NCBI RefSeq assembly: GCF_002113885.1
Contig: NW_018408648.1
Span: 260,423-324,422, forward strand
DNA from: Mizuhopecten yessoensis
Taxonomy: Eukaryota
Reading direction: 5' to 3'
DNA length: 64,000 bases
Part shown: piece by piece, positions 9,901-57,315 of the stretch
Layout of the letters: the number at the start of each line of letters is the position of its first letter
How positions within the stretch are numbered: position 1 is the stretch's first letter
The notes under the pieces: model-generated
What the model was told of the DNA's origin: nothing
What the model saw: only the letters and a program-made list of their open reading frames with translations
Database searches by the model: none
Made by a program: the position numbers and the translations under genes

Positions 9901-12900
9901 GTCATACAGGGTCTAACACCAGTCACTTTCATACAGGGTCAAACACCAGTCATTGTCATACAGGGTCTAACAACGGTCACTGTCATACAGGGGTCTAACA
10001 CCCGTCACTGTCATACAGGGTCTAACACCAGTCACTTTCATACAGGGTCAAACACCAGTCATTGTCATACAGGGTCTAACAACGGTCACTGTCATACAGG
10101 GGTCTAACACCCGTCACTGTCATACAGGGTCTAACACCAGTCACTTTCATACAGGGTCAAACACCAGTCATTGTCATACAGGGTCTAACAACGGTCACTG
10201 TCATACAGGGGTCTAACACCATTCACTGTCATACAGGGGTCTAACACCATTCACTGTCATACAGGGGTCTAACACCAGTCATTGTGGTACAGGGGTCTAG
10301 CACCAGTCACTGTCATACAGGAGTCTATCACCAGTCACTGTCATACAGGGTCTAACCCCAGTCACTGTCATACAGGGTCTAACAGCAGTCACTGACATAC
10401 AGGGGTCTAACACCAGTCACTGCCAGTCACTGTTGTACAGGGTCTAACACCAGTCACTGTCAAACAGGGTCTAACACCATTCACTGTCATACAGGGGTCT
10501 AACACCAGTCATTGTCATACAGGGGTCTAACATTGTCATGAAGGGGTCTAACACCAGTCACTGTCATACAAGGGTCTAACACCAGTCACTGTCATTCAGG
10601 GTCTACCACCAGTGGCTGTCATACAGGGGTCTAACACCAGTCATTGTCATACAGGGGTCTAACATTGTCATGAAGGGGTCTAACACCAGTCACTGTCATA
10701 CAGCAGTCTAACACCAGTCATTGTCACACACCGGTATATCACCAGTCACTGTCATACAGGCTAACACCAGTGGCTGTCATACAGGGGTCTAACACCAGTC
10801 ACTGTCATACAGGGTCTATTACCAGTCACTGTCATACTGGAGTCTAACACCAGTCACTGTCATACAGGGGTCTAACACCAGTCACTGTCCTACAGGGGTC
10901 TAACACCAGTCACTGTCATACAGGGGTCTAACACCAGTCATTGTCATACAGGGGTCTAACATCAGTCACTGTCATACAGGGGTCTAACATCAGTCACTGT
11001 CACACAGGGGTCTAACACCAGTCACTGTCATACAGGGTCTAACATCAGTCACTGTCTTACAGGGGTCTAGCAACAGTCACTGACGTACAGGGGTCTAACA
11101 CCAGTCATTATCATACAGGGTCTATTACCAGTCACTGTCATACAGGGGTCTAACACCAGTCATTGTGGTACAGGGGTCTAGCACCAGTCACTCATACAGG
11201 GTGTAACAACAGTCACTGTCATACAGGGGTCTAACATCAGTCACTGTCATACAGGAGTCTAACACCAGTCACTGTCCTACAGGGGTCTAACACCAGTCAC
11301 TGTCCTACAGGGGTCTAACACCAGTCACTCTCGTACAGGGGTCTAGCACCAGTCACTGTCATACAGGGGTTTAACACCAGTCACAATCATACAGGGTCTA
11401 TCACCAGTGGCTGTCATACAGGGGTCTAACACCAGTCACTGTCATATAGGGGTCTATCACCAGTCACTGTCACACAGGGGTCTAACATCAGTCACTGACT
11501 TACAGGGGTCTAGCATCAGTCAATGACATACAGGAATTTAACACCAGTTACTGTCACACAGGGGTCTAACATCAGTCAATGACATACAGGAATCTAACAC
11601 CAGTCACTGTCATACAGGGGTCTAACACCAGTCACTGTCATACAGGGGTCTAACACCAGTCATTGCCATACAGGGGTCTAACACCAGTCACTGTCGTACA
11701 GGGTCTAACACCAGTCACTGTCGTACAGGGTCTTACACCAGTCACTGTCGTACAGGGTCTTACACCAGTCATTGTCATACAGGGGTTTAACACCAGTCAC
11801 TGTCATACAGGGGTCTAACACCAGTCACTGTCACACAGGGGTCTAACACCAGTCACTGTCATACAGGGGTCTAACACCAGTCACTGTCATACAGGGGTCT
11901 AACACCAGTCACTGTCATACAGGGGTCTAACACCAGTCACTGTCATACAGGGTCTAACACCAGTCACTGGCACACAGTGATCTAACACCAGTCACTGTCA
12001 TAAAGGGGTCTAACACCAGTCACTGTCATACAGGGGTCTAACACCAGTCACTGTCATACAGGGGTCTAACACCAGTCACTGTCATACAGGGGTCTAACAC
12101 CAGTCACTGTCATACAGGGGTCTAACACCAGTCACTGTCATACAGGGGTCTAACACCAGTCACTGTCATACAGGGGTCTAACACCAGTCACTGTCATACA
12201 GGGGTCTAACACCAGTCACTGTCATACAGGGGTCTAACACCAGTCACTGTCATACAGGGGTCTAACACCAGTCACTGTCATACAGGGGTCTAACACCAGT
12301 CACTGTCATACAGGGGTCTAACACCAGTCACTGTCATACAGGGGTCTAACACCAGTCACTGTCATACAGGGGTCTAACACCAGTCACTGTCATACAGGGG
12401 TCTAACACCAGTCACTGTCATACAGGGGTCTAACACCAGTCACTGTCATACAGGGGTCTAACACCAGTCACTGTCATACAGGGGTCTAACACCAGTCACT
12501 GTCATACAGGGGTCTAACACCAGTCACTGTCATACAGGGGTCTAACACCAGTCACTGTCATACAGGGGTCTAACACCAGTCACTGTCATACAGGGGTCTA
12601 ACACCAGTCACTGTCATACAGGGGTCTAACACCAGTCACTGTCATACAGGGGTCTAACACCAGTCACTGTCATACAGGGGTCTAACACCAGTCACTGTCA
12701 TACAGGGGTCTAACACCAGTCACTGTCATACAGGGGTCTAACACCAGTCACTGTCATACAGGGGTCTAACACCAGTCACTGTCATACAGGGGTCTAACAC
12801 CAGTCACTGTCATACAGGGGTCTAACACCAGTCACTGTCATACAGGGGTCTAACACCAGTCACTGTCATACAGGGGTCTAACACCAGTCACTGTCATACA

Positions 12901-15900
12901 GGGGTCTAACACCAGTCACTGTCATACAGGGGTCTAACACCAGTCACTGTCATACAGGGGTCTAACACCAGTCACTGTCATACAGGGGTCTAACACCAGT
13001 CACTGTCATACAGGGGTCTAACACCAGTCACTGTCATACAGGGGTCTAACACCAGTCACTGTCATACAGGGGTCTAACACCAGTCACTGTCATACAGGGG
13101 TCTAACACCAGTCACTGTCATACAGGGGTCTAACACCAGTCACTGTCATACAGGGGTCTAACACCAGTCACTGTCATACAGGGGTCTAACACCAGTCACT
13201 GTCATACAGGGGTCTAACACCAGTCACTGTCATACAGGGGTCTAACACCAGTCACTGTCATACAGGGGTCTAACACCAGTCACTGTCATACAGGGGTCTA
13301 ACACCAGTCACTGTCATACAGGGGTCTAACACCAGTCACTGTCATACAGGGGTCTAACACCAGTCACTGTCATACAGGGGTCTAACACCAGTCACTGTCA
13401 TACAGGGGTCTAACACCAGTCACTGTCATACAGGGGTCTAACACCAGTCACTGTCATACAGGGGTCTAACACCAGTCACTGTCATACAGGGGTCTAACAC
13501 CAGTCACTGTCATACAGGGGTCTAACACCAGTCACTGTCATACAGGGGTCTAACACCAGTCACTGTCATACAGGGTCTATTACCAGTCACTGTCATACAG
13601 GAGTCTAACACCAGTCACTGTCATACAGGGGTCTAACACCAGTCACTGTCCTACAGGGGTCTAACACCAGTCACTGTCATACAGGGGTCTAACACCAGTC
13701 ATTGTCATACAGGGGTCTAACATCAGTCACTGTCATACAGGGGTCTAACATCAGTCACTGTCACACAGGGGTCTAACACCAGTCACTGTCATACAGGGTC
13801 TAACATCAGTCACTGTCTTACAGGGGTCTAGCAACAGTCACTGACGTACAGGGGTCTAACACCAGTCATTATCATACAGGGTCTATTACCAGTCACTGTC
13901 ATACAGGGGTCTAACACCAGTCATTGTGGTACAGGGGTCTAGCACCAGTCACTCATACAGGGTGTAACAACAGTCACTGTCATACAGGGGTCTAACATCA
14001 GTCACTGTCATACAGGAGTCTAACACCAGTCACTGTCCTACAGGGGTCTAACACCAGTCACTGTCCTACAGGGGTCTAACACCAGTCACTCTCGTACAGG
14101 GGTCTAGCACCAGTCACTGTCATACAGGGGTTTAACACCAGTCACAATCATACAGGGTCTATCACCAGTGACTGTCATACAGGGGTCTAACACCAGTCAC
14201 TGTCATATAGGGGTCTATCACCAGTCACTGTCACACAGGGGTCTAACATCAGTCACTGACTTACAGGGGTCTAGCATCAGTCAATGACATACAGGAATTT
14301 AACACCAGTTACTGTCACACAGGGGTCTAACATCAGTCAATGACATACAGGAATCTAACACTACTCACTGTCATACAGGGGACTAACACCAGTCACTGTC
14401 GTACATAAGTTTAACACCAGTCGCTGTCATACAGGGGTCTACTAACACCAGTGGCTGTCATACAGGGGTTTAACACCAGTCACAATCATACAGGGTCTAT
14501 TCCCAGTCACTGTCATATAGGGGTCTATCGCCAGTCACTGTCACAGAGGGGACTAACATCAGTCACTGTCATATAGGGGCCTATCACCAGTCACTGTCAC
14601 ACAGGGTCTAACTCCAGTCACTGTCATAGAGGGGTCTAGCACCAGTGACTGTCACACAGGGGGCTAACATCAGTCACTGTCACACAGGGTCTAACTCCAG
14701 TCACTGTCATAGAGGGGTCTAGCACCAGTGACTGTCATACAGGGGTCGGACACCAGTCACTCTCATACAGGGGTCTAACACCAGTGACTGTCATACAGGG
14801 GTCTAACACCAGTCACTCTCGTACAGGGGTCTAGAACCAGTCACTGTCATACAGGGGTCTAACACCAGTCACTCTCGTACAGGGGTCTAGAACCAGTCAC
14901 TGTCATACAGGGGTCTATCACCAGTCACTGTCACACAGGGGTCTAACATCAGTCACTGACTTACAGGGGTCTAGCATCAGTCAATGACATACAGGAATCT
15001 AACACCAGTCTATGTCACACAGGGGTCTAACATCAGTCACTGACTTACAGGGGTCTAGCATCAGTCAATGACATACACGAATCTAACACCAGTCACTGTC
15101 ACACAGGGGTCTAACACCAGTCACTGTCATACATTGATCTAACTCCAGTCAATGTCATACAGGGTCTAACACCAGTCACTGTCATACAGGGTCTAACACC
15201 AGTCACTGTCCTACAGGGGTCTAACACCATTCACTGTCATACAGGGGTCTAACACCAGTGGCTGTCATACAGGGGTCTAACACCAGTCACTGTCATACAG
15301 GGTCTAACACCAGTCACTGTCATACAGGGGTCTAACCCTAGTCACTGTCCTACAGGGGTCTAACACCATTCAATGTCATACATGGGTCTAACACCAGTGG
15401 CTGTCATACAGGGGTCTAACACCAGTCACTGTCATACATGGGTCTAACACCAGTCAATGTCATACAGGGTCTAACACCAGTCACTGTCATACAGGAGTCT
15501 AACACCAGTCACTGTCACACATGGGTCTAACATCAGTCACTGTCATACAGGGGTTTAACACCAGTCACTGTCATACAGGAGTCTAACACCAGCCACTGTC
15601 ACACATGGGTCTAACATCAGTCACTGTCATACCGGGGTTTAACACCAGTCACTGTCGTACAGAAGTTTAACACCAGTCACTGTCACACAGGGGTTGTCAT
15701 ACAGGAGTCTAACACCAGTCACTGTCATACAGGGGTCACACTGTCGTCACTGTCACACACGGGTCTAACATCAGTCACTGTCATACAGGGGTCTATCACC
15801 GGTCACTGTCACACAGGGTCTAACACCAGTCACTGTCATACAGGGGTCTAACACCAGACACTGTCATACAGGGGTCTAACACCAGTCATTGCCATACAGG

Positions 15901-17030
15901 GGTCTAACCCCAGTCACTGTCGTACAGGGTCTTACACCAGTCATTGTCATACAGGGGCTTTACACCAGTCACTGTCATACAGGGGTCTTACACCAGTCAC
16001 TGTCATACAGGGTCTAACACCAGTCACTTTCATACAGGGGTCTAACACCAGTCACTGTCATACAGGCTCTTACACCAGTCATTGTCATACAGGGGCTTTA
16101 CACCAGTCACTGTCATACAGGGGTCTAACCCCAGTCACTGTCATACAGGGTCTAACCCCAGTCACTGTCATACAGGGGTCTAACACCAGTCCCTGTCATA
16201 CATGGTCTTACACCAGTCATTTTCATACAGGGGCCTAACCCCAGTCACTGTCATACAGGGCTCTAACACCAGTCACTGTCATACAGGCGTCTAACACCAG
16301 TCACTGTCATACAGGGTCTAACACCAGTCACTTTCATACAGGGGTCTAACACCAGTCACTGTCATACATGTCATTCAGGGTCTAACACCAGTGACTGTCA
16401 TACAGGGGTCTAACACCAGTCACTGTCTTACATGGTCTTACACCAGTCATTGTCATACAGGGGATTAACACCAGTCACTGTCATACAGGGCTCTAACACC
16501 AGTCACTGTCATACATGGTCTAACAACAGTCACTGTCATACATGGGTCTAACACCAGTCACTGTCATACAGGGTCAAACACCAGTCACTGTCATACAGGG
16601 CTCTAACACCAGTCACTGTCATACAGGGGTCTAAAACCAGTCACTGTCATACAGGGTCTAACACCAGTCCCTTTCATACAGGGGTCTAACACCAGTCACT
16701 GTCATACATGTCATTCAGGGTCTAACACCAGTGACTGTCATACAGGGGTCTAACACCAGTCACTGTCCTACAGGGGTGTAACACCAGTCACTGTCCTACA
16801 GGGGTCTAACACCAGTCACTGTCATACATGTCATTCAGGGTCTAACACCAGTGACTGTCATACAGGGGTCTAACACCAGTCACTGTCATACAGGGTCTTA
16901 CACCAGTCATTGTCATACAGGGGCTTTACACCAGTCACTGTCATACAGGGGTCTAACACCAGTCACTGTCATACAGGGTCTTACACCAGTCATTGTCATA
17001 CAGGGGTTTAACACCAGTCACTGTCATACT
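6951..17030. repeat. ~10 kb tandem satellite, 27-28 bp unit GTCTAACACCAGTCACTGTCATACAGGG
   Basis: Directly visible, roughly 360 units. Perfect 28-mer core at ~12006-13570 with diverged flanks. Confidence 0.99.
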
Positions 17031-40089: not shown

Positions 40090-43000
40090 TTAACAATGAG
40101 TTTCGTCGTAACATGTCTTTGCTTCAGTGTTTTCATTGATATGCATTTCCCCTGCATAGATATCCCAAAATTGGTCAGATGTAGATGTTGTTGGTTCCAT
40201 TTGCCTGTGGTATTGTACCAGCGGTACATCACAGCCTTCCATAGAAACCTGAATGGAAACTCCGCCATCGTTTCCAGTTTCTGAACGAAATTGTTCCGAT
40301 GAGTTATCGCTGTGCGAGACTTCTTCGTTGATATCTGATGCACAATCTAACGGCTGTACTTTATCTGTGTCGATGACATTATTAGTCTGAAAATAAATAG
40401 CAATAAGTTAGATAAGAGTATGATTGTATGTTCGAAATTCATTCACCACTTGTTCACATATATTATCTTGTTTGTATAAAATTATGAACAAAATCGTTTA
40501 TATTTTAAGTGTTTAGTAATGACATACTGATTTGAAATATGTCTATACGTAATAAGTAAGTATAAATAGGTTAAGGTATATTGTTATTGAATATTGCACT
40601 ATTACTAGGCGTATTTATAACCTACTAAAACACATATCGATGTTTTTGCCTTTTAATTAAGATTTACCTGTCCGGAGTATATATGTTTTTGTCTTAAAAT
40701 GTCAAATCGACTAGCAATTTTTAACCCCAAAAGTAATACTGTATTAAGACCTTACCTAAATAAGTGTTACAATATTTATCAGGTGTATACCTCAGTAGTA
40801 TATATTCAAACATGCACTCCTTCAATTTCAGCAGATAATTGACGAAGGATTGAATATTGAACATTCTTCTTAACGTTTCGGGATGTTCTCGCATTAAATT
40901 GCCACACTAGAAACGTAAAACTTACCTTTAAACCAGAACTGTTAGATTTGATGATGAAACAGACACACACAAACACTAAGACGCTGACCGCCATTAAGAT
41001 AGGTGCAACGATCAGAGAGACAGCAGTAGGCGATATGCAATGCTTCTTTGTCGTATCAAGGACGGTATTTTCGGGGCATTGGTTTACACATTGGTTATCA
41101 TAAACAAGAAGATCGTTCGATTCATAGCATTTTGATTTCAGTATACAGGATGTATTATTGTATACCATTGACAAAGCCGTGCACTTTTTAACACACATAA
41201 AATTAAATATTTCGCTTCTGAATGGATGCGATGCCGGACATTGATGAACACAAGTGTTGTCTTCTGTATATAACATACTATCACAAACCATGACACATTT
41301 CAGTCCATCAGTAAATCTTGAAGCAGGACATTTTGTGTGGCATTCTGTATCCTTATTATTAAAGAGTTTTGTTTCTGTGAATTGGTGTGTTGCTGGGCAC
41401 TTTTCAACACATTCTTTGTTAACAAAATAGCTATCACATGTGGTCACACATTCAAAGTTCTTAATAAATTGACTGTCTAGACACGCTTTTCTACAAATCT
41501 TTCCTTTAAGAGACTGTTCAAAAAAGCTGTACTCGGGTGGACAAGAGAATGAATTAATGCATATATTATTCACGATAGCGTTATGGTTAGAACAAGAGGG
41601 CACACAAGTTGCATTTTCCTGGACATAGCGATCTATGCATGTGCTTCCACAAATGTTTGCTTTTGGTAATGGTGAAGACAAGTTCACGTCTTTTGGACAT
41701 GCTTTAGTGCACTCATTATTTACCAGAAAACGTGAATCTGATGGACACGTCTGAACACATGTGTTGTTTGATATGACATCCGGTTGTGTGCAATTAAAAA
41801 GGCATTTTCTCGTTTGTGGGTCCAGGAGTTTGTGTATGCCATCACATTTATGCACACATGTTTGACCGATTGAATACGGATTAGATTTAGGACACTTTGG
41901 TATGCATTGATCTTCAAAAACAAACCGCGGTTTAAAACACGACTCTTCGCAACGGAACAAATTCTTACGTTTTGGGTACGCATTGTACAAAAAGCGAAAC
42001 TTGTGTGATGAGGGACATCGGTGTAAACATGAACGGTTTCCATAGAAAGATGCAAGTGGCTCTGGGCATTCAATGTAGCATTTATTATCCAACTTATATG
42101 TGTTATCTGGACACCGACTGACACAGTGTTGAAGCCAAGTCCCATCTGCCTCCTCGTTGTAAATAAACATGTAAGATACCGGGCAATGTGTGACACATGT
42201 AAAGTTGTGTGACAATATTGGACAGTGATCAACACATTGATCATCCAAAGAGAACTGTTGATATTCTTTGCAACTAGACACGCATCGGAAGCCAGTTGAT
42301 GATCCTGCTTTGACAGTATAGTTAAATCTGTGTGTCATTGGACACTCATCGACACATGTTTCATTGAAGTAACTCGTAAGCAAAGGACAGGTGTCAACGC
42401 ATGTCATATTAAATTCCAGTTTTCCCGATTGTTCTCCTGTATTCTTGCAAGTGTCAACGCAATATACTGGATTCTGTCCATTTCGTTGCGTCGATGTATC
42501 GACGAAATGCAACGCATGTGTCAATGGGCATACGTGGTGACATGTTTCATTGTATATATATGCTGCTTGTCTAGGACAGATAAACACACAAGAACCGTCA
42601 AAACTGTAATAATCATTCGGACAACTCGCAAAACACCTTCGCTGAAAATTAAACCTGCTAACATCAGGACACTTTTCAACACACGTGTTATTATATGTGA
42701 ACAGATTGGATGGACAGGTGCTACGGCACGTCATATTATACAGAATAGTGCCTGGGCTTTTACCTCGCTCCTCACATGAATTGACACAGTAGTTCAAAAC
42801 AGAAAAACGATACTTTCTTGCTGTTAATGGGTGTGTTTCCGGGCACGTGTTTCGGCATTGCTCGTCGAAAAGATATTTAGCTTCTTCCGGACAGCGAAGG
42901 AGACAGGAACCGTGAAAATTCACATACGGATAATTACACCGAGGGAAACATTCCCCACGGAATAGATAATGTTTAGAAGGGCATGCGTCAACACATTCGT

Positions 43001-46000
43001 CCTTTAACACTTTATATCCAGAGGGGCAACTTCCCATGCATGTCATATTGAACATATATCTAGCATTAATTGGACAACTTTGTAGGCAGGATGTATCGTT
43101 AAATATAAAGGAATTTGTTGGACAAGCCGAAACGCATATCTGTTGATAAGTATATTTATGTTTTTCTGGACATTCTTTAACGCAAGTCCGATTAAAGATG
43201 TTCATTTCCGTAATACATCTGTGAACACATACAGTGCCATCTGTATAAGTTTGGTCAGGGCAGTAGGGTAGACACACAGGAGTTTTGTACGGGGGCAACC
43301 GCCTCGACAGGACATAGACAAAGGGCACATAATCTGGGCATTTTTGAACACATGACATATTCCAAAGAAAACTCAATTCTCTAGGGCATTGAATCTGACA
43401 TTTACTTTCGTTGATATTTGTAAACATTGGGCATCTGTCCAAACAAAGGCTTGTATTCCAAACAGTAAATTCGTACTTGTTTTTCGGCAGGCAGGAATCT
43501 ATGCAAGTCGCACTGGTTCTATACTTGCCTTGGGGGCATGTTTTAGTGCATTCAGATTCTGAAAGAACATATCCTGTAGAACAATTTGCAACGCACTTAT
43601 TAGCTTCGATGAAAGGATACTCTTTAGGGCAATCTTCTACACACGTGTTGTTGAAAATGTATGGGCTTAATTTTGAGCAGGTATAAACACAGGAAAAGTC
43701 TTCAATCACAGTTCCCAATGGACAAGTAGTGTGGCATTGGTAGTTAACGCAAAACGGCCTCACATTTGGACAAAACCCTTTCTGACAAAGCAAATTTGCT
43801 CCAGCATTTTGGCGTTCAGATGATGCAGTTGTTTGAACTGTTTTCGAACAAACCCCAAACTTCGTTGCTTCATAACCATTCGGACAAAAGGTTAGACACA
43901 AATTTTCGAATAAAAATGGTGCGAATTCCGGACATTTCCTCGTGCAATTTGAGGCGAACTCAATTTGGAAGTCATTCGATGGACATTCTACTATAGTTTG
44001 ACCGTTGTAATGAAAAAACATGCTGTCTGCTGACTCATCCAGGTTTTGCTGTGGAAATTCAAAAAAACATGTGTTATTTTGAGTTAAAAAATGGTTTTTC
44101 GACTCATCAACAGTCAACAATTGAAATGTTGATGTCTAAAACGTTCGATCAGGGCATCTATGTGCTACGCAAATAGTGCTGAGGTATTGCGGAATACTGA
44201 TATTCTTAAATGCATTTTCATACTTGATGTTTGGATAAACTTTGATCAATGTGTGCCTAAATGAAGTTGCTAGAGCGATGCCACTGAATTATTTTGACAA
44301 ACAGTACTTGACCGTTGTGTACACATTCTGATTGAAATACGATACGAAGTGAAGTCGCGAGAGCTATGAAACTGAATATCGGAGACATCAAAATATAATC
44401 AATCGCCACTACATAAGGTAATTTTCTGATCTCAAACTCGATGCAAAAAGGAACCTGTTAGATTTTGGGATACAACTTTCTCCCAACACCTGTAATTATA
44501 TTAAGGCGAATGGCTAGGGAGACACTGTCGAACACATGTTGATTTGCAGGGACCCAGGTCAATCACCTATTATGATAGCATACAGTGGAATGCAATAAGC
44601 CTATTCTTTCTTCGAACCTGCACAGGCTGTCAGAAAAGGAAAAGAAATCTAGACAAACAGAAAAATACCATGAGCCCTCAATAACACCGAATTGTCCTTC
44701 TGTATTACAGTCTTTCCGAAAAGAGATAAATAATAAGGATATGGGCTTACTTCGTTTATATTTGTTTCCAAACTTCGAAAGGATTGCCAGTTCTACTAGT
44801 TGCTGAACCAAGCTTTTTTCAAAATTTACTGCCATTTTTTGTACAAACACTCAGGGTTACAGACTATTTGTTACACTGTATAATAAAGAAGTGGATGAGT
44901 GTGAAGAGATTTAACGTTTGTTTCATTAATAATTAAAAAACAGGAGAATAACAAATGACAAAAAAAACTATAAATCGAAATCGAAATTGATAAAACTAAG
45001 GGATAATATGAACAAAGAACAAATTTACACTGCAGACAATGAAAAGTACAAGGAAAAGGAAACCTGGTGTTCATTAAAGATATTTGTCTTTTGCTTCATT
45101 GATGACACCCGCTTTGTAAATCTACGTCAGGAACAACTAATGGCATGTCCTCAAATTAAAAAATCGGGTAGTGAAAACAAAATGCAATATAATCAAAAGC
45201 ATCGACATTCATCGAGCTTGCTCTGAATATCAAAACTTCCGTGATTGATGTCGACTGCTGCAAACGAACAATACAGGGTTTTAAAAGATGCAGGTTGAAG
45301 AAGACTATGAGCATGTTTTATGTTCATCATTGTTGATTTCTACGAGAGTATTTCTTTGGATGCTCTGAAGGTCGACGTTTCTGATTCTTTCCTTATAGAT
45401 AAGTAAAATCTTTGTATTCCTCGTATTTATTATGCTAACTAGAGTACTTTAGAGTGTTTTTTTCATTGTGAATTACCCGGTTCTCGCTTAGAAGAGTAAC
45501 TTAAGTTAAATTTGGCATAGATTTACATGACGAGTGTCGTCGATGAAGCAGAGGACGCTTACCCTTCCGGAACACCTGATCTTAATCTCCTTTGACACTT
45601 CAACATTCTCTTGTTGGTTTATTGGTAAAAGTTTCAGCAACTCCTGATATTGATCCAATACCTAATATCATCATCTCATGTTCTCAAATAAATATAATAG
45701 CTGTATTTATACTACTAAACGGACTGTTTTAAATAGATTATTGTCTGTTTTATAGATAGATTTTACAAAATTTTTGTTCATGATCTCCATATGGTTATCT
45801 TGGCAGGTAGCAGTAAACCTATAAGAGTTTTCTATCATTACGGGAAACGAAAGTGCGGATCGTTTTACACAGGACGACGCTTGAGTCAACTTTTCACGAC
45901 CTACTGTGTGGGGAATGCATGTGCCATTGTCTGTGACGTTACATTCAAATCAGGTGACACTTTCGAAAAGGTGCCGTTAGAAGCATTGTCGCATCGTAAT

Positions 46001-47075
46001 ATAGATCACAAATTTGTCTTTAGCATACCCGCGTATATGTAGAGGTATTAAGCACGGTGGCATATTACTAGTAGTAAGTTAAGACAGTTTCTGCCAAATC
46101 CTCAGATGGTATTCATTTTAGGAATGGTATTATTTTGTATTGTATAACGCCCTCGATTGGCTTGTTATAGCCGGAAAGTGCGCTATATCGGATGTCGTGT
46201 TATATAGGTTTCCTTATTGACTATTTATAATGAAAAGTTCCTTGACGTTTCGATGACAAGTACGATATGTACACTGTCACCTTCATCAGGTAAATGACCA
46301 GTGAAGCGTATGCAGTGTAAAATATGAACGAGTTGTCGACAAAATCGAAGTCGATTTCGGCTACGCTGTAAGCGTATGTACACTAGTTGTTATATATGTA
46401 TCAAAATGACTCGATCCAGCTACGCTTATACTTACCAATCTGAAGAAAATGTTTAGAAATATCCTTATTGACTAGTCTGTACAAATACAGTGGTATGAAT
46501 TAAAACAGAAAAAAATATTTATATATATATATATACATACAAGTGCGTCACTTCAGTATCCATGGACAAAAATCAAACTCGCAGTCGTGTCATGATTCAA
46601 AACCCTTATGCGCAAATATATATGTGTATACACGGAACAATTCAAAACCTTTAAATAAAACCGATCACATGCCTCATTGAAATGCAGCGGTGCAGCTGTA
46701 TTGTCTTCAACAATACGTTGTCGGTCGTCACAACACACAAGAGTGAGCCCACTTCATAAATATACACATTATAGCAGCTTTTCAGAATGTGTGACGGAAG
46801 TATTGTTACAATTAAAGGAATAGTGGCTGGATGACACATTCAAAGGTAAGCACGTTGCCGCATATTAATAATTCACAATAGATAAACAACCGCTACTATG
46901 TGTATTTATTTTGAATAAATCAATCATATACACATATCAATATTTATTACTTGTATAAATAATGTTTATATTCCAAAGAAACAAATGGTATCTGTTATAA
47001 TTGACTTCTTACCTGTGTAACTAGGAACGAAGCTATAAAAACAAACACACAGAGCTGATGTCTATCCATGATCAT
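40090..47075 (-). CDS. Cys-rich furin-like-repeat type I transmembrane protein (PCSK5-CRD-like, no protease domain)
   Basis: Exon 1 47075/47069-47013 encodes signal peptide MIMDRHQLCVFVFIASFLVTQ (donor gtaaga). Exon 2 44135 (or ancestrally 44489)-40926 has dozens of CxxxCP repeats and TM AVSLIVAPILMAVSVLVFVCVCFII (donor gtaagt). Exon 3 40386-40090 is an open acidic tail TNNVIDTDKV...CYDETHC*. All junctions are phase 0. Confidence 0.8.
40926..44135 (-). CDS. Main exon of Cys-rich membrane protein (ectodomain + TM)
   Basis: 1104-aa ORF in the track. The part after ...SSGLK is read-through of the donor at 40925. Confidence 0.88.
45515..45590. mobile_element. Possible Penelope-like element remnant
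   Basis: gcagaggacgcttacccttccggaacacctgatc resembles, from memory only, a motif common in bivalve PLE-related repeats. A hammerhead motif lies ~650 bp away. Confidence 0.35.
46238..46294 (-). ncRNA. Minimal hammerhead-like motif (Penelope type)
   Basis: Minus strand: c CUGAUGA a GGUGACA-guguac auauc guac u-UGUCAUC GAAACGUC aagg. Core is intact, stem II is long, stem III is palindromic ACGU, stem I is poor. Confidence 0.55.
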
Positions 47076-47681
47076 AACTGTTCGTCATATAGCATACGGT
47101 GTTGAATAGCACATTGCAAAACTTCCTGTTTCTAAATATATCGCTTTGTCCATGCAGTCACGCACCCAAGGTTGCTTAGCTTCCTTTGTATATTATAATC
47201 AATTTACGAATCGAATAGGGGATCTTTTAAAACGACATCTCAAACTCAAGTTTTCGCTAGATTGTAGGTTGAGTATAAGAAAAATAACTTATCGACAATG
47301 TTTTGTTCAACAGTTCTCCATACTATGCAGGGGAGATAAGAAGAGATTTTATTCTCGACACTTACCCAAGATTTTGCCGTGGCTCAGGCACTCTGAGATT
47401 TCTCTGTTACTGCCTCAAGGTAGGTGGCAATTATGTTTCTCCCATCTATTAGTCACACAACTCCATGGACAGTAGCTTTAAAAAAGCATGACAGAATATA
47501 AATAATAAAAACTAATACACATTTATTAATTCATCACTTGCAAAATAACGAATAAATCAATATTGGATCTACACAGGCATTCCTACAGTAACCATTTGTT
47601 TAGCTAACAGATTTCCCTGTCTAATTTTCAGCTTATTTTGATATTATAAAGAGGTTTGTCGACAAATGAAAGAGTTAATAG

Positions 47682-48560
47682 CACAAGAGGCCTAGGGGAC
47701 TTAACGTTTACCTCAGTGAGATTGACAAAGCAAAACTCGTGAGAGCGATACATCAGGTTGTAATCTTTTGTAAAGCTAAACCACACAGACAAATTAATTC
47801 TTCATACGACACACAGATAGTTCACTTAAACGAAAAATACACTAGAAAAAGTATATAAAACTACAAAGTTATGAGGTTTTAACATATTTCAAAATACACG
47901 TGTATCAGCACGGTAGGATATATCACGTTGGTTTCCCTTTCGGTATTAAAAGATTCGTGTGACTATTGCTACTACTACTGTCATCGAGAAATTAACTTCG
48001 TTTCCATGAACTTGATAAAACAAACACCATTGTAGCATAAGCTGAATGTTAAACCAATATGAAAAAGCATAGTCGCTTGTACATACAAGCGGTCGAAAGT
48101 ATGAACGGGATGGCAACATAAACAAAGTAGCGTAATATCGACGTTAAAAGAAAGCATAAATGAATAAAATAGTTGTTTGTAAAATGTTTGAAACCTCTAA
48201 CTCATAATATTTGGCTGAAATTGTGTGTCTGTTCAAAACATGGAGCTGCTATTTTACCTTGACTTCCGGAAGCGATGACATTGCTGAATGCAATTGATTA
48301 AATTGAGAAGGTGTGTTTTGAAGATTTTGCACACAGTTCCCCCTTATGGCCCCAATCCTCAGGCACCTAAGGCGTCAGCCCCTTCTCGAGTATAAATTCT
48401 GATCTTCATCATCTAAGGATCATTTCATGAAATGTTGCTCAAAATGCACTGGTAAGTTTCAGAGATGTTTTTTGAAGATTCTGCACTCAATGACCCTGTA
48501 TAGCCCCACAACTCAGCCCCCAGTGGTGTCAGCCCTATCTTGAGTACACCTTTATTTCGT
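47682..48560. mobile_element. Degenerate HINE-like element
   Basis: Starts acaagaggcctagggga..tttacct; two diverged internal units (tttgaagatt..cccc..gtcagccc). Confidence 0.45.
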
Positions 48561-49105
48561 CAGAAATTGAAAGGCAAACAATTGGTAACCTCACAATATA
48601 TTGCATGTTGTTCTTTGGTCTGGTTGAAGCATTATACGTGTCACTAAGAGAAAAGAAAAACTGCTGTGTTAACCAGGAATTGATTTTTGGATCATTGTTA
48701 GTAATCATAAACAAAAGAGAAAGAAAAGAGAAAAGAATAGGAAAGAAAAAACATATACATCTATCTGTCCCTGCTGGTCGTCGAGCCTTTTACCTTTATA
48801 TTTCGAGTTACATGTCGTGTTTAGTACCCAATATTCGACAATAAATGAGCGCTTTAAGGTTTTCATTGACACTATTCTAGCACAGGAAGTCGTGATTCCT
48901 TGTCATCTCTGTCTTCCCACAAGATAATATAGTAAACAAACAAAAACAAATAGCGATATATAATACAAATTGTCATATGCCGCTTCAAACCACAAAATAC
49001 ATAAAACTCAGTAACAACCGTACTAACGGCTTCTTCTTACTCTGTACTACCCCGAATACTGCTCCGAACTGGCCTGATCCTCTTATGAGATCATACCGCA
49101 GCTTT

Positions 49106-49221
49106 AAAGTGAAACTTTATAGTTTCACCTTGCTTTAAGCTCGCAGATAGAGTAATAAAAGTACACACTATGTATTATTTTAACATGATTTCAGATAGTT
49201 TATTGGATATGGCTATATAAA
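49106..49221 (+). promoter_or_regulatory. Putative promoter of the TIR gene: inverted IRF-like pair, CCAAT and TATA
   Basis: AAAGTGAAACT-ttat-AGTTTCAC (49106-49128), ATTGG at 49202, TATATAAA at 49214-49221. A downstream donor G|GTGAGT at 49359 implies a non-coding first exon. Confidence 0.5.
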
Positions 49222-49762
49222 CGACAGATTTTTTTTAATAAACTGGCGAATTGGTCCATTTGAGTGACAAAAATTCACTTGATCATCAAAAAATATCAGC
49301 AATTTTTTGTTTAATATTATGATACTGTAGTAAACAATATTCTTCTACATACATTTCTGGTGAGTTTTTTAACCGCTATGTCAGACAAAAATAAGATTTT
49401 ACTACAGAAAACATTTCAGCTGACTTTGATCCACACCATCCGGATTACTGCGTGCCGCTTGTATCGGGGTACCGAAACAAATTCTTCGTCAGTCAATCAT
49501 TTAATTTTTAATGTCTAGAGTGAATATCATTCGAACCTATAGATGGGTTGTGTTTGGAATCATCGATGGGTTTTTTCAAGATGGACATAAGTTATAGATG
49601 TTGAAAGACAATGGTTAAGTTGCCATATAAAATCAAATACATCATCTTAAGTTAATTAAAACATAAGGCAAATTTACATCAGAATACCAGTTTTATAAAC
49701 AAAATACAATGCAACTCAATTAGTAATCTCTTGTTCTAAAGGTAATAACTTGTATAAGGAAT

Positions 49763-52700
49763 ATGCTTGAGGAAGCGGTACCACTCCTTGCCGATGAAAA
49801 TGAGGCCACAGAACACAGGGATTCCATAGACGAGATTCAGAGCAGATACTTGTCAGCTGATAACGAATATCATGTCTTCATATCATACAGCTCAAACGAC
49901 GCTGATTTCGTCGAACAACTAAGAAGACATCTTGAAGAAGACCTGAAATTTAAGTAAGAATTTTTAGGACAAATGCAAAATAATATTCACAAAGGCTGAG
50001 CTTTTATTTTCTAATTTAGAACATCAAATACCAAACTTCTTATTTTTGACATACCGGTATGAAAGAAATCTTTTAATATGAAAAATATAAATATTCCTTA
50101 TAGTTACTTTTCTGGCCACGGAATTGCATGCTAGTTAAAGATAACTTTAACATGAGAATGTGATAACTAACAGTAAATAACGTATCAATACAACTGGCAG
50201 AAGAATGAGACTGATGATGGGTGTATTATAATATGAATGAAAAATAGAAGTAATCTAAATAGCGAGATTTAATCATGTAATATAATACTGTAATGAGAAA
50301 ATGAAGTATAATTTATTATTATGATGACAAGTGTGATTATTTCTAACTGTCATTTTTAAGAATATGGTCACATTGTATATCACCTATGTCTGCGTTTTGT
50401 TCGTCATGCAATAGGTCCATGCTGGATGCACACTTTACACCGGGCAAATCAGTTATAGACAATATGTCCAACTCGTACGACAAATGTGAAAAAGTGCTCT
50501 TCGTCGTGTCAGAACATTTCTTGGGTAGTGGATTCTGTGAGGAGGAGGTGAATCTTGCATACCAATATGCAATGGAGAAAAAACGGAGGGATTACATAGT
50601 TGTACTGAAAATAGATGAAAGCCAACTAGACAGAAAACTTCGCACATATACATACATCGATGGAGTCGACCGCGATATTGACAAAATCGGGAGGAAATTT
50701 CAAATGGCATATGCTAGATGCGGTAAGCTTTTGTGAAAGATATAGAACTACCTGTGATGTGTTTTAAATTTTAAAGCATCTTCTACCTTAATTGATAGTA
50801 TCATTTTAACAAAATTCTTTTATTACTTCATTACTGATGTCAATACTCAATATTTTAGGTTCAGCTGCTGTTGACGAAGAGAATAGTAATGGAACCACAA
50901 TACTGGTTAAATATCCAGTGGAAGAGTCGCCCAACCTGTTTGGGGGGATGAACTATGTGTTCCCTGACCTTTCTGAGGATGAAATGGAAAAGCTAAGATC
51001 TTCTGACATAGAGGTAGGTAGATCTTCTAACATTTTCGTGAGACAATTATCTACATTATTCAAAGGCGCATTTCTATCAATTGATAATTATTAAGAGTAT
51101 TTATAACTGCCCTTTATTCGATCTGAAATTGATAAAACTATGGCAACTATGACAAATAGATTTCATGAATGAAGTTCTTTCATAAGAAGAAGTTTAAAAC
51201 TTGGGAAGCGTTTTCTGATTCATCGACGACATTCATCGTGTATACTTAGTTCAAATTCAAGACAAACAGCACCTCCAAAGTCTAAATGGTAAAAAGACAT
51301 CGAAACCATAAAGCACACAAATGAGCATAACCAAAATCGTTATTAACTAATTGCAAAATATTTATAAACGTATACACAATTACATGTACATATATACAGG
51401 TGTCTATGCATAACTTGATACGAAAAAGCAAAGTTTGGAAAAAAAAACCCGTAGCTTTTGTTAATCTGTGATATTTTAAGGATTCGGAATTTTTGAATTG
51501 TAGATGATTGATATTCACAAAATAAGTTTACAACAGCATAACAAAACATAACAAAAACAATTACACGTTTAAAGAAATTTACATTTTATTTTTTTGGTGT
51601 CTACGAAGCATTCAGCGACTTGCTACAAAGCTATTCAAACAGAAATCAACCGGACTAGGCTACTAAATCGATACTCAATGGTTGATGGATGTACAGTGAT
51701 GAAAAAACGGTGTGTTTTTTGTGGAATGTTCACGGGATGTTTAGCGTTTCTATGTTCCATTTTGGCCATCACGTATTGGGCAAACGGTTTTCTCAGAAGC
51801 CACTGGTTCTGGTTCGCGGGTGTGGTTGTGGTATTAGTTTTATCCTTGTCTTGCTCTGCTGGAATCGCCATAATATGGACCCAAAGGATTCTGAAAAAGG
51901 TTAGTTACATAATTACAAATCAAAGTAGGGGTGCTAAATCAACACTGAAGTTCAGTTACCTTGTTATGGTCAACATATAAGACCAATAACGCTTGTGTGT
52001 AGAGAGCACCGCTTAAATTATATTCACCTAATAAGAACATGGAATGCGTCTGTTGATATAAAGACAGCAGATACAGTTAAGTACAAAACTTACGACCCTA
52101 GTGTTGAATGTTATAAGAAATGCGTTGACTTTCATATGGCAGTATACATGCAGTAAAACCGTTTATAACATTGTTCGGGTAATTGAGTGGTATCTGAAAC
52201 ATTTGTTATGTCAAATATATTTATAGTCGCCACACAGTGGAAACTGTAATATTATTATACTGTACCAACTTTATTTTTCAGATATGCGACGGGTTGAGAT
52301 CCATTGCCAATACCAACATGAACTTGAAAAGTAACAAATACATCCTTTTGTCAAGGAAGGATTTTAACGGTTTCCATGTATCCTCAATCACAAAGATTTT
52401 TCCAACTCAATAAGGATGAGTGTCTACGAGGCCCTTTTTGGGCCCCGGTATATCCAGATTTTCACCTCCTTTATTTGATCAAAGGTGTCCTATTGTATCA
52501 CATGTGCAAAAACTAAGGCGAAAGTGGGTTTTTTGGGGTACCAAAAAGGGGAAGAATAAATCACAAATATAAATTGCTGTTTTCAAAATGAGCTAAAACA
52601 ACCAAAACAATACCATTTCTGTTTTTGAAAACACATGTAAATTAAATCCGGATATACCAGGGCCCAAAAAAAGGGCCTTATAGTCACTCATTCAAAATTG

Positions 52701-55700
52701 AAAACACATATCATTTTATAATTCACGAAGAATCATGGGATTCAGAATTGGTCCAAATGTCATACAGCAATGTAAGCATCCGTCTAAAAACCTTGAATCT
52801 AAACCTATAAAGTTATACATTATAATCAAAGGATTCCTCATAGTTAAAATAGTACGATTCTTGACATGTTAAACAGCTGATGTTTATTTACTACGACATC
52901 GCCCCTTGCTGGGTAAGTAAATACCTTTATTATGTAACATGTGATATTCCAAAATGTTTCCCTAAAATGGGTGTGTCATTTCTAGACAGTATACGTATTT
53001 ATACTGCAGAGTCTAAGGAAGTTCAGTTTTTTTAATTAGACTTTCAATTAGAAATTCATTTAATATCTTCTACGAAAAAAATCAACTTACACGGACTTTG
53101 ACAAAAACAAATCGCTTCTTTATAGTCTACGTACACTGTCTGGCGATTTTTCATGTACATTGCCTGCAGCAGACGTAATTTAATGCGATTGTTCTTATTT
53201 TTTTTTAAAGCATTTCATTTCGCTCTACCCTGTATGTAAGTGTGAAAAATATCAGAAATAATATTTTCTAAGAAAACCTCTTTTAAATGGCGCTATCAGG
53301 GGTCACGTGGTTTAGATTCATGCCCGCTCAGCGGTTAACCGGTCTGGTGCATGTTTATCAGTTTTTATTAGTTGTTTTCCACTAAAAATCTGCTATCAAA
53401 ACATGTTTTGTTTACCTTTTACGGATGATTTTGAACGATTTCTTAGGTCAGTATATAATCTATATGAGACGTTATAACACCAGGTCAATCAATTTTGAAC
53501 ACCTTATTTTAAATCAAATTGAAATTTGTTTATTTCCCTTTTCTATAAATTTATAAACATTTTTAACAACAATTAGGACAATAAAATCAACCAATATTAA
53601 TCATTCTTCGTGGCTTGGACAGTAGCGCACAAGTGTTTTTTTTTTGTGGCAGGAAATCTGAGTACCCGGGGAAAACCGAAGTGGTGACCTTGTACTTGTT
53701 CACGTCCAATCGGGGAAGCGAACACCAGCCGTTTGGTGAAAGACGAGTGCGCTAACCACTGCAAATCTGACTATACCCTAAAGATTCGAATTTTAATGTA
53801 ACATTGCCATACTGAAAAGCGGTTGTCCAGGCGATGTTGTTCAGCAACGTAGGTAGTGGTCAGTGACTGGATAGGTGTCCACCCGCTCATTACACAATAT
53901 TAAACACATGTACATAATATTTCATACTCAATGTTAAAGTCTTATATGATCATGTTAATACTGTAATCTTCATTGTTTAGGAATTCTTTAAAGGACATGT
54001 GGAGTGGTCGGATACTTCTCAAGAATATACAAATGTAAGTCATCATCATTTGGTTCAATATGTCTCATCAATGCACATGTCTTTAGATTTTTTTTTATTA
54101 ATCTTTAGCCAATTGAAAAATAAAATATTATCTCAAATATTAATTAGATGATCAGGAATCAAATCTTCACTTGGTAAACGGCTCGCTAATGGTAAGTCAA
54201 AATCTTGGATATTTTCATATTTATGTTTCAAACTGAAAACATTTTGAAAAATAATTTATATACATATACATGTCAACACGCAAATTCTTCTATATCTTCA
54301 TAAATGTGATTAAAGACCATGAAATAGGAATGTTCTTCCCGTAATTCTATGTCAGATTTATTTTTCAATGCCCTATTCGGTTATTGATTACCCAATTGAG
54401 CAACAGTAGTTACAATGATAAGCAAAATTTTCAAGAAATTTTCCTGGCCGATCAGTTAGACTCCGCATGAAGCGCCTGCATTGCCTTCAGCATTACAAAG
54501 GGGAATACTAACGAGTGACCTCACTGAACATGATCAACATCCTTTATACCAACTATAAGTGGTCATTTTGCTTTTTATGTAACTTTTCTTTTTCACTTAC
54601 TCGTGGGCCAGTTTTTAATATTTTGTTTTTATTGGCACCCCACTTTTCAATCCTTATTGAACATTTATTTAGATCTCACAGTTCTTCACTATTCACTATT
54701 TATTTATATGACAATAACGATGCTATTTTCTAGTCCGCCGTCATTAATAAATTACCTATTCACAAAATTCATAGTTTCTTTTTGAGCAGCCAACACATTT
54801 TTTACTGTTAACTTTATTTTTTGTATTGCTAGAAAATGTGCAGGTGGATATTCACGCAGGCCATTGTGTTATATTACGGTGGCCAACACAATAATATCAC
54901 GGTGACAAATAACCCAAGGCATCCGATGGGGACATTTCATAGCTGCCTCTGTCAACTGTTAGACATCACAAGGACAGAAATTAATGAATCTGAAAGACTT
55001 AAAGCGGTAAGAATATTGCGAATAGTATACTCTAAATCTAAATATGTGTACAATGTTGTGCAGAGGAGTGTGTGAGGAGTCAAAGTGGATATGAGATTGT
55101 TGAATGTTGTGGGTTGCAAAAACCTATTTGACTGCAAATTATGTAATAATATACACTAATTGACAGAAATATCGTTATTAATTTGACCTAAAATGCTTTA
55201 AAATAGGGCAACGACGACTAGGTTAGGGTCACAGAAACCGTGTTTAATTTTTTTATGAAATACCTTCGTAAAATATGCAAGCTCACACTTATTATGTATT
55301 TATCATACCTTGTTTACGTCTTGGAATACAATTTTTTGTATTTGTAAGCATTATGATCTAAACTACACAACAGTTTAGCAACACCAACAAAAAAATCAAA
55401 ATACCCCATGAGATTCATATTATTTACAGCTGACAAAATAACAAAGTTATATCAAACATTAAAAGAGGGTGAGTTGGCTGGGTATAACAAAATCACAGGG
55501 CGATGCTTTTTTCTACTGGGTATGCTTAAGATGGGAGTGTCAAGTACAGGAACTATTGACAGTTTTAAAGCATTGTTGATCGATATACCTCTGTTGGACT
55601 ACCAATGCCGCTCAATGTGGGGTTTCCCTAATTTATGATACATAGTAATATACTGACGACTAGGGACACTATTACGGTAAGTAATACGGGACACCACAGT

Positions 55701-56287
55701 CCATTGCTACCGCCTACCTTACCTACATACATAAACGTTATACCGTCATATCTGTCATGGTCAAAATCAATAATACGGTACATAGTCATAGTCATACCCT
55801 CATCATAAATCGGTCGCGGTTTATTTAGAGTACCCTCCGTTTTTTTGTGTTATATCTCCATAACATGAAAAATATATTCAAGTTAATCCTTAAATATTTA
55901 CTAATGTTATCAGTTATCTAAAGAAACTTGTAACACGTATTTTTTGTTTGAGTCGTTTGGAAACGCAATGCTTATACGGTGTAAAACGGAAAAACAAACC
56001 AATCAGAGGTCATCTACACACGATATTTTTAAGGAACAGATATTTTATTGTCCACACGATATAAGTTGCCTAGTATGAGATCTAAAAACTCCCTGGTTGT
56101 CAGACTGTTTGTCTCCGTCCATGATATTGTAGACAATCCGATTTTGTCGTAATTAATATGTATTTCATTTGTTTTACAGAAAACCCTGAAGAGTCACACC
56201 GAGGATGAAGAGACGTGTGTAATGAAAATCGTTGGATCAGAACCAGCTGACAACGTGTCGTGTGCAGAAGAAACGGTTGAAATATGA
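49763..56287 (+). CDS. TIR-domain protein with C-terminal two-TM TMEM268-like region
   Basis: Exons: 49763-49953, 50415-50722, 50859-51013, 51609(or 51597)-51899, 52282-52377, 52877-52912, 53981-54034, (54156-54191 uncertain), 54833-55006, 56180-56287; phases are compatible. TIR box1 YHVFISYS, FTPG, VLFVVSEHFLGSGFCEEE. Two hydrophobic segments in exon 4; FIYYDIAPC and RH..CLCQ motifs. Confidence 0.82.
52416..52691. mobile_element. MITE in TIR-gene intron
   Basis: atgagtgtcta..gggccctttttgggccccggtatatccagattt pairs with aaatccggatataccagggcccaaaaaaagggccttatagtcactcat. Confidence 0.8.
53650..53772 (-). mobile_element. V-type SINE copy
   Basis: ggaaatctgagtacccggggaaaacc...gtgcgctaaccactgc. 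Confidence 0.55.
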
Positions 56288-57315
56288 AACGGCAGTCAGT
56301 GACAAGATAGTGACGTCCTACAATTGAAATGTGTGGACCTTAAATGTAGTTCAGTAGAGATGCTTCATTATAAAAGTTCGCTAATAACAGTCACTGTTTG
56401 AGGTCTGTTGAAATTGCCACAAGCTATACTCCGGCTTAAAACTTAAAAACTAGCACGAGTACTTGATTTCCACTACTGGTCGTGTTGTAGGGAAATACGA
56501 ACGTTTGTTTCCCTATCACAAGGGCAATACAAAGTTTATTATGCCGACATAAAACAATAATACAAATATCAAAGATGATCAGGTTAACGCGCCGTTGTTG
56601 TCATCTACTTCAGCCGTCAGTCGGAACTCAGATGTGGCGACCCCGTACACAGTCTCGCATTAATATTCCTGCTTCCGTTATTGTCTTGACGATACAAAAC
56701 GAGCACAAGCCATATCACAATTGACTCGCCACTCCAGACCCTGTGGTATCACGATTTTCTTGATAGATGTCTTTGTCGCCAATTAACTTTCTGACTGTTT
56801 TGGTTGTTAACAAGCTGTTGTCACCACATGAAGGATATGAACTTTTTTTTCCGTATAATTTCACACAATTCTGTTAAATATTACATGTATTTGTTGATTA
56901 TTACATACGTTTGAAGCATATGGCCGAGAACCATTTTTGTATGAGTGTGAAGCAAAAAATGATGGTAATACCATACGCAACTGGCATTGGTCACGATAGT
57001 GTCATTTACTCGATTGATGGTATTTTGCTCGGATAATATGGCCAGGTTTTAAAACAATATTGGTAACCAAAAGTAATATGGGTTTGAAGTAGTGCATGTA
57101 CTAAAAAATCTGCCTTCCTTTCAAATGCAAATAGTCATGTAGAATATTGAACTAGCTTACCCTGATCCTTGGTAAAAAGAAAACTATTCTGTCTCACCTA
57201 TATAACAGCGTATCTGATTGGAATTTGTGAATTACATGACGGTAAAATAAAACATTTAGTCGTTTTCACGCGCTCAAGATTCCCTGGTCATATTGTTATT
57301 CGGAGCCTCTCTAAG

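Follow-up and report, generated by a model that had tools for sequence, protein, structure and literature searches.

The window analysed here, a stretch of 64,000 nucleotides of the scallop Mizuhopecten yessoensis (contig NW_018408648.1, positions 260,423 to 324,422 of the forward strand), harbours the gene LOC110461612, the product of which combines an N-terminal TIR domain, by its sequence of the Toll-like receptor (TLR) kind, with a membrane hairpin followed by a region that appears to be a divergent branch of the TMEM268/DUF4481 family. When the fourth coding exon was used as query, an exhaustive HMMER search returned a protein of 470 amino acids that is 100% identical to the exon (XP_021370826.1, titled 'uncharacterized protein LOC110461612' and the same as OWF42066.1 and UniProt A0A210Q012; P0001 hereafter), and tblastn of this protein against the window recovered all nine coding exons. 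In the AT-rich DNA these show up as short plus-strand open frames with good splice signals between 49763 and 56287. The gene consists of one non-coding exon of the 5' untranslated region (5'UTR) and nine coding exons, which run from the ATG at 49763 to the TGA at 56285-56287 and total 1410 nt, i.e., 470 codons, with splice phases that are compatible throughout.

The exon model is carried by RNA. Contigs of the RNA run X1, which is stored as contigs and behaves like a transcriptome, cross the introns at 49953>50415, 50722>50859, 51013>51609, 51899>52282, 52377>52877, 52912>53981 (alternatively 53653) and 54034>54833, all of them GT..AG joints, and a loose contig end at 55006 is exactly the first 30 bases from 56180 on. 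A single contig of 798 nt contains a piece of the 5'UTR together with exons 1, 2 and 3, while the junction between exons 3 and 4, on which the connection of TIR and membrane part depends, is seen in one contig (28 letters on its short side) and in one read of the raw RNA run X24 (73 letters), and is further backed by the RefSeq model and by the same fusion in paralogues. The 3' end of the non-coding 5'UTR exon lies at 47387-47419 on the plus strand, directly before a donor GT at 47420, where 30 loose letters of an X1 contig find their sole match in the window. As the 120 letters upstream of the joint between the 5'UTR and exon 1 in the 798-nt contig, read back in the frame of exon 1, hold a stop codon and no ATG, the protein starts at 49763 with the TIR domain first.

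The preliminary description of this locus, made from the letters alone, had proposed a spliced protein of about 480 residues in which a TIR carrying a putative catalytic glutamate, encoded at 50545-50547, precedes a linker, two hydrophobic helices, the motifs FIYYDIAPC and RHPMGTFHSCLCQ and a Cys/His-bearing tail, with neither leucine-rich repeats (LRRs) nor an immunoglobulin (Ig) domain. The RNA places all of these elements in one transcript, with the first motif reading FIYYDIAPCW, joins the TIR exons to those of the transmembrane helices and bears out the TIR-first order; the length is 470 residues rather than 480, and two small exons (52282-52377 and 53981-54034) were recognised from the RNA.

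All the exons lie on the plus strand. Exon 1 (49742-49953) holds the start codon and encodes 35 N-terminal residues followed by box 1 of the TIR (YHVFISYS), matching positions 1-23 of the Pfam TIR_2 profile. Exon 2 (50415-50722) encodes the TIR core, which aligns to the TIRs of TLR2 and TLR6, with the BB-loop Pro73-Gly74 (50440-50445), Cys105 and Glu108, the last being the third E of S-G-F-C-E-E-E and encoded by the GAG at 50545-50547. Exon 3 (50859-51013) carries the linker after the TIR and the conserved Y-V-F-P-D-L-S with which the TMEM268-like module begins; its 3' half and the N-terminus of the homologue P0002 of Argopecten irradians share 66% identity. Exon 4 (51609-51899) encodes both hydrophobic helices, residues ~252-276 and ~282-310 with Kyte-Doolittle maxima of 2.30 and 2.57, with a loop of 8 residues between them and KKR and QRILKK on the flanks. 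Exon 5 (52282-52377) adds 32 codons (ICDGLRS...NGFH) that are also found in P0001, exon 6 (52877-52912) 12 codons (LMFIYYDIAPCW) that match positions ~157-186 of the DUF4481 profile in the Pfam search of the soluble segment, and exon 7 (53981-54034) 18 codons (EFFKGHVEWSDTSQEYTN). Exon 8 (54833-55006), reached by the deeply covered joint 54034>54833 (depth 82.5), encodes R406-H407 and C415-x-C417, residues that are invariant in the family and lie within RHPMGTFHSCLCQ, and exon 9 (56180-56287), placed by the loose X1 end and by tblastn of P0001 at 100% identity, ends the protein with an acidic tail containing the conserved EETCVMKI motif and the stop TGA. In total ~160 residues lie C-terminal to the hairpin.

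An alternative acceptor extends exon 7 upstream (53653-53980, plus strand), the joint 52912>53653 having a depth of 9.5 compared to 17.4 for the productive joint. The resulting 382-nt exon (53653-54034) meets a stop two codons past ...APCW, so that this isoform is either a truncated protein of 361 residues or non-productive. Upstream of exon 1, within the intron that separates it from the 5'UTR exon, the plus-strand stretch 48953-49075 weakly resembles residues 322-360 of the protein by tblastn (44% over 41 amino acids, E 0.003); the similarity crosses the boundary of exons 5 and 6 without an intron and may be a decayed processed or ancestral copy, or chance. A search of 47000-57000 against Rfam found nothing.

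The TIR domain spans residues 35-163. Pfam TIR_2 (PF13676) matches residues 38-150 of P0001 with 74.7 bits and E 1.1e-20 (cut-off 28) and TIR (PF01582) scores 34.4 bits (cut-off 21.3); TIR_2 also matches exons 1 and 2 separately, exon 2 at profile positions 28-111 with E 1.4e-11, and with E 1e-5 for TIR. When P0001 was compared by phmmer to the chains of the Protein Data Bank (PDB), the closest solved TIRs were those of TLR2, TLR6, TLR1, TLR15 and TLR10 (E 2e-11 to 1.5e-8), followed by TLR5 and SIGIRR (1.5e-5 to 6e-5), MyD88 and TLR3 (3e-4 to 1.6e-3) and the CRISPR-associated TIR Cat1 (1.3e-3), with no chain of SARM1, of a plant TIR or of ThsB at E<=10. Foldseek with an AlphaFold2 model of the TIR, weak as this is (predicted local distance difference test score, pLDDT, 56), put the TIRs of TLR10, TLR6 and TLR2 on top with a template modelling score of ~0.5, in agreement with the sequence order. 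Judged by sequence, then, the TIR is of the TLR kind, and a SARM1-like TIR was rejected. The automatic UniProt name of the protein, Toll-like receptor 1, is equally untenable, as it has no LRRs and no signal peptide, its TIR is N-terminal and two helices come after the TIR. Pfam, together with the non-coding nature of the upstream exon, revealed no LRR, Ig domain, death domain, signal peptide or other N-terminal domain in P0001.

Within the TIR, Glu108 aligns to the Glu of WCKYEL in TLR2 and of WCHYEL in TLR6, and Pro73-Gly74 to the Pro-Gly of the BB-loop. The position of Glu108 is that of the catalytic Glu of the TIRs that cleave nicotinamide adenine dinucleotide (NAD+), of E750 in TLR4 and of the Glu in TLR2. 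Among the four TIRs of the scallop family Phe71, Gly74, Cys105 and Glu108 are invariant.

For the C-terminal half, the link to TMEM268 (C9orf91), whose family is Pfam PF14800 (DUF4481, gathering score 25 bits), had been suggested from its motifs. Four family proteins give colinear DUF4481 matches, P0001, P0002 and the two Mizuhopecten paralogues P0003 and P0004. Their soluble pieces, freed of the transmembrane helices, have DUF4481 as top match, in all four at profile positions 152-198 (E 5.4e-4 for P0002, 1.9e-3 for P0004, 0.055 for P0003 and 0.077 for P0001), whereas the pieces made of the transmembrane helices of the same proteins have no DUF4481 match; this places the signal in FIYYD..PCW. 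In none of the Pfam searches with the family proteins did the match to DUF4481 take in the RH..C.C motif. The likeness thus holds for the segment after the hairpin, in four proteins and with E-values of 5e-4 to 0.08, and fails for RH..C.C and by the Pfam cut-off. A language-model search with P0002 offers a further lead in the same direction, its top three named clusters being TMEM268/DUF4481 (0.90, 0.89 and 0.88, with 192-201 shared features), and in the supplement of a preprint DUF4481 is assigned by HHblits/HHsearch, with at least 80% probability, to residues 177-368 of A0A210Q012 (10.64898/2026.04.20.719644). Three further Mizuhopecten proteins of the same TIR cluster carry TIR and DUF4481 in that table, and in the part of it covered here DUF4481 is limited to those four Mizuhopecten rows (10.64898/2026.04.20.719644). 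Human TMEM268 also has two adjacent transmembrane helices, at 104-126 and 130-152 (PMC6748091). From this combined sequence evidence we regard the kinship of the region after the hairpin with a divergent branch of TMEM268/DUF4481 as well supported. Pfam searches with single C-terminal exons gave no match, the pieces being too short, and exon 4 by itself drew nothing but bacterial noise from the language-model search. As positive charges flank both helices, the positive-inside rule predicts that the TIR and the tail both face the cytosol, with the 8-residue loop on the outer side; an ectodomain is lacking.

The family is at present a scallop family. Apart from P0001, the exhaustive HMMER search with exon 4 had a single match, P0002, a protein of 344 amino acids of Argopecten irradians (XP_069108140.1) that is 36% identical in this search, and word searches added two paralogous genes of Mizuhopecten (P0003/5/6 and P0004/7/8) and a fragment from Pecten maximus (P0009). 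Whether the module was entered singly or as a profile, the word searches returned scallop proteins only, but their index is incomplete, as P0002 was not among the matches. The residues kept invariant across the family include Y-x-x-x-D-L-S before the hairpin, F-x-Y-Y-D-x-x-P-C-W, R-H, C-x-C and E-E-T-C-x-M. The paralogue proteins P0003, P0004, P0006 and P0007 (loci L002 and L003) have long C-terminal extensions with tandem G-G-T-S-L-R-G-A-E/V and repeated E-E-T-C-x-M-K, an extension that the window gene does not have.

The paralogues P0006 and P0007 are likewise fused to a TIR, and at the Argopecten locus on CM084279.1 (L001) a separately annotated TIR gene lies 5.4 kb upstream of the P0002 gene on the same strand. 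Its TIR exon (L001 4242-4555) is 54% identical to exon 2 and ends, like exon 2, at 'g|gtaaga' in phase 1. The first exon of the module (L001 9936-10090) shows a phase-matched acceptor, tttcag, 65 nt before the annotated ATG, and the stretch from acceptor to ATG is conserved as protein (N-x-N-G-x-x-I-L-x-K-Y-P-V); in the 5.4-kb gap itself there are reverse-transcriptase-like open reading frames (L001 5683-7867, minus strand). The Argopecten TIR and module are thus probably one gene that was split by annotation, and P0002 was rejected as an ancestral TIR-less form, since TIR exons in matching phase stand upstream at its own locus. Because distant paralogues within Mizuhopecten are fused and the phases and conservation at the Argopecten locus match, the fusion most likely predates the split of the two genera. 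So far, within the reach of the searches used, the TIR and DUF4481 architecture has been seen in Pectinidae alone, and more distant carriers are possible.

Next to LOC110461612, and head-to-head with it in the window, lies a gene on the minus strand (40806-44120) with a frame of 1104 codons that encodes Furin-like Cys-rich repeats (Pfam Furin-like, E 9.6e-26) and one hydrophobic helix near the C-terminus. A homologue (E 6e-156) stands head-to-head with the paralogue P0007 (4047-7124 of its locus L003, minus strand), and another (E 7e-106) is found 3.8 kb downstream of the Argopecten gene (L001 24984-27818, minus strand). It seems that the pair of TIR-TMEM268-like and Furin-like genes was kept and duplicated as a unit, and the presence of the Furin-like neighbour at three loci suggests a two-gene receptor, in which the Furin-like single-pass protein would be the best candidate for a partner.

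Taking the whole together, we propose as the best explanation, and as a somewhat probable one, that LOC110461612 encodes a membrane-tethered TIR signalling subunit composed of a TLR-type TIR and a TMEM268-like hairpin. The TMEM268-like module would serve both as anchor of the TIR at a membrane and as binding site for a partner membrane protein, the adjacent Furin-like Cys-rich single-pass protein being the candidate; clustering of the partner would gather the TIR domains, and the signal would pass by TIR-TIR assembly. As a less likely alternative, or on top of this, Glu108 would make cyclic ADP-ribose (cADPR) from NAD+. As to origin, a TLR-type TIR would have joined a gene of the TMEM268 family within the scallop lineage, the resulting fusion being duplicated later along with its Furin-like neighbour. 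A role of the module in binding a membrane partner is consistent with mammalian TMEM268, which binds integrin beta4 (ITGB4) and CD11b, and the knockout of which in mice leads to worse sepsis and a higher bacterial burden (PMC6748091, PMC11169502).

Several observations weigh against this proposal. The adjacency of the Furin-like gene is circumstantial as evidence for a partner, and in Argopecten the neighbour is placed tail-to-tail, not head-to-head. By whole-protein score no family member reaches the 25-bit cut-off of DUF4481, neither the best one, P0002 (22.8 bits, E 6.7e-5), nor P0004 (12.9 bits, E 0.072), P0001 (10.5 bits, E 0.38) or P0003 (7.5 bits, E 3.1). AlphaFold2 modelled the membrane module, from four sequences, at a pLDDT of 45, so that the topology and a putative metal site are predictions from sequence rules, and the oligomerisation role that the preliminary description proposed for the Cys/His tail is conjectural. 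Two of the three raw RNA runs have zero reads for LOC110461612, and its expression is therefore low or conditional. Finally, the BB-loop proline is needed by TLRs for MyD88 signalling; it is present in LOC110461612 and replaced by Tyr, Tyr or Ile in the other three family TIRs, and this variable Pro alongside the invariant Glu108 leans, as far as sequence goes, towards an enzymatic TIR.

Such an enzyme is the alternative that survives best, and we consider it a serious if rather unlikely possibility. Here clustered TIRs would form composite sites in which Glu108 cleaves NAD+ to cADPR or another ADP-ribose product, or depletes NAD+. The pattern of conservation favours it, in that all four TIRs of the family keep Cys105 and Glu108, yet differ at the BB-loop Pro and at the positions between Cys105 and Glu108. 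In addition, A0A210Q012 is entered in Table S2 of Hurieva et al. 2026 with a TIR at 35-163, DUF4481 and GLU 108 at the active-site position; the value of 2.3 given for GLU 108 is, by the Methods of the preprint, the Calpha distance in Angstrom to E85 of ThsB and lies inside the criterion of 3 A (10.64898/2026.04.20.719644). The same preprint reports that the TLR4 TIR makes cADPR in an E750-dependent manner, and so do several invertebrate TIRs, one of them molluscan (10.64898/2026.04.20.719644). It also reports, however, that the TLR2 TIR with the same Glu, which points out of the pocket, has no cADPR or NADase activity in vitro, and that, among 61 animal TIRs with this Glu, activity in the assay was limited to 12 (10.64898/2026.04.20.719644). 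The nearest solved relatives of the scallop TIR are TLR2, TLR6 and TLR1, and neither SARM1 nor a plant TIR is matched at E<=10, which likewise counts against an enzyme; the TIR model (pLDDT 56) is too weak to judge the pocket. The preliminary description had read the Glu three residues after the Cys as a mark of NAD+ cleavage, which the aligned and yet inactive Glu of TLR2 WCKYEL shows not to be diagnostic: the catalytic Glu position is necessary and not sufficient, and a catalytic role of the LOC110461612 TIR, as read from its sequence, is plausible, though the Glu does not discriminate.

A bolder proposal, which we think improbable, joins the enzyme to the neighbour: the two genes would form a two-gene scallop innate receptor, in which a Furin-like sensor is served by a co-duplicated TIR-TMEM268 transducer that makes cADPR by way of Glu108 when clustered, and the scallop gene would be a 'Rosetta stone' fusion. 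If such a two-gene receptor existed, TMEM268 proteins in general, those of vertebrates included, would be membrane docks in TIR/TLR-type signalling.

Two further readings are each very unlikely. In the first the protein would be a negative regulator or decoy, a membrane TIR that soaks up the TIRs of TLRs or MyD88 and damps signalling in the manner of SIGIRR. The occurrence of SIGIRR among the solved relatives (E 2e-5), the lack of an ectodomain and a death domain, and the variable BB-loop of the family are all compatible with that role, but none of them is specific to inhibition, and the invariant Glu and the conserved receptor-like pairing fit an active signalling unit better. In the second the C-terminal half would be no kin of TMEM268 at all, only a lineage-specific hairpin anchor whose likeness to DUF4481 arose by chance or convergence. 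This would agree with the family-wide scores under the gathering score, with the RH..C.C motif left out of the profile alignment, with profile word searches that return scallop proteins only, with a module profile that has no relative in the PDB and with the poor module model. It accords badly, however, with DUF4481 being the top and nearly sole match of four proteins at the same positions even without the transmembrane helices, with the E-value of 6.7e-5 for P0002 and its language-model neighbours in TMEM268 clusters, and with the independent HHsearch assignment at a probability of at least 80% and the two adjacent transmembrane helices common to both kinds of protein.

The weakest alternative, an artefact of annotation or read-through in which a TIR-only gene and a TMEM268-like gene are joined in rare chimeric transcripts, could draw on the few molecules that contain the joint of exons 3 and 4 and on the two Argopecten genes annotated 5.4 kb apart, but it is extremely improbable given that exon 3 holds both the linker and the module start and is joined to the TIR exons in the 798-nt contig, that the splice phases are compatible throughout and the paralogues are also fused, and that the Argopecten gap holds reverse-transcriptase-like frames with phase-matched splice sites kept on either side.

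A membrane-tethered TIR subunit of this kind is best appreciated by comparison with known systems. With TMEM268 the scallop proteins share the pair of neighbouring transmembrane helices joined by a very short loop, the F-x-Y-Y/F-D..C segment after the hairpin (profile ~152-198) and the size of the module, the Argopecten model having 344 amino acids and human TMEM268 342. TMEM268 has no TIR, whereas the scallop proteins carry one at the N-terminus, score below the Pfam cut-off and end in an acidic tail of the EETCVMK type that is repeated in some members. The TLR1/2/6/10 group has the closest TIRs (E down to 2e-11), with box 1, the BB-loop Pro-Gly and the S-x-(W/F)-C-x-x-E of helix alphaC in common; unlike these receptors, the scallop protein lacks a signal peptide, an LRR ectodomain and a single-pass helix, and its TIR is N-terminal and followed by the hairpin. 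A membrane-held TIR devoid of a sensing ectodomain, presumed to serve a separate receptor chain, is known from Hydra (HyLRR-2 with HyTRR-1/2) and from the sorting adaptors TRAM and TIRAP. In the scallop case the candidate receptor chain is encoded next door and has Furin-like Cys-rich repeats, not LRRs, their partnership being a candidate one; the Hydra TRR proteins, in contrast to the scallop protein, are single-pass with a C-terminal TIR, and TRAM and TIRAP are held by lipid anchors. The catalytic TIRs, i.e., those of SARM1, of plant TNL and TIR-only proteins, of ThsB/AbTir and, according to the preprint, of TLR4, share the helix alphaC Glu and the BB-loop Gly; the scallop TIR differs from them in having no detectable sequence kinship to the SARM1, plant and Thoeris TIRs, and its nearest relative with data, TLR2, is inactive.

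The gene and the domain pair are already on record. LOC110461612 is an annotated gene, and its TIR and DUF4481 pair and Glu108 are tabulated, with no discussion, in 10.64898/2026.04.20.719644; in the literature searched no mention of TMEM268 and TIR together was found. With gene and pair present in databases and a preprint, what we describe is an experimental lead and not a new kind of system. The known phenotypes of TMEM268 are limited to receptor stabilisation and anti-bacterial defence in mice; its natural fusion to a TIR hints at a membrane role near innate immune signalling. A compact, ectodomain-free TIR of TLR type with an invariant Glu would be a convenient case for the question of enzyme versus scaffold, and the repeated pairing with a Furin-like gene points to a candidate for a split receptor in a bivalve of commercial importance.

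Elsewhere in the window, positions 8000-16000 form a block of ~8 kb with 49% G+C and a steady negative GC skew, compared to ~35% G+C in the rest of the window.

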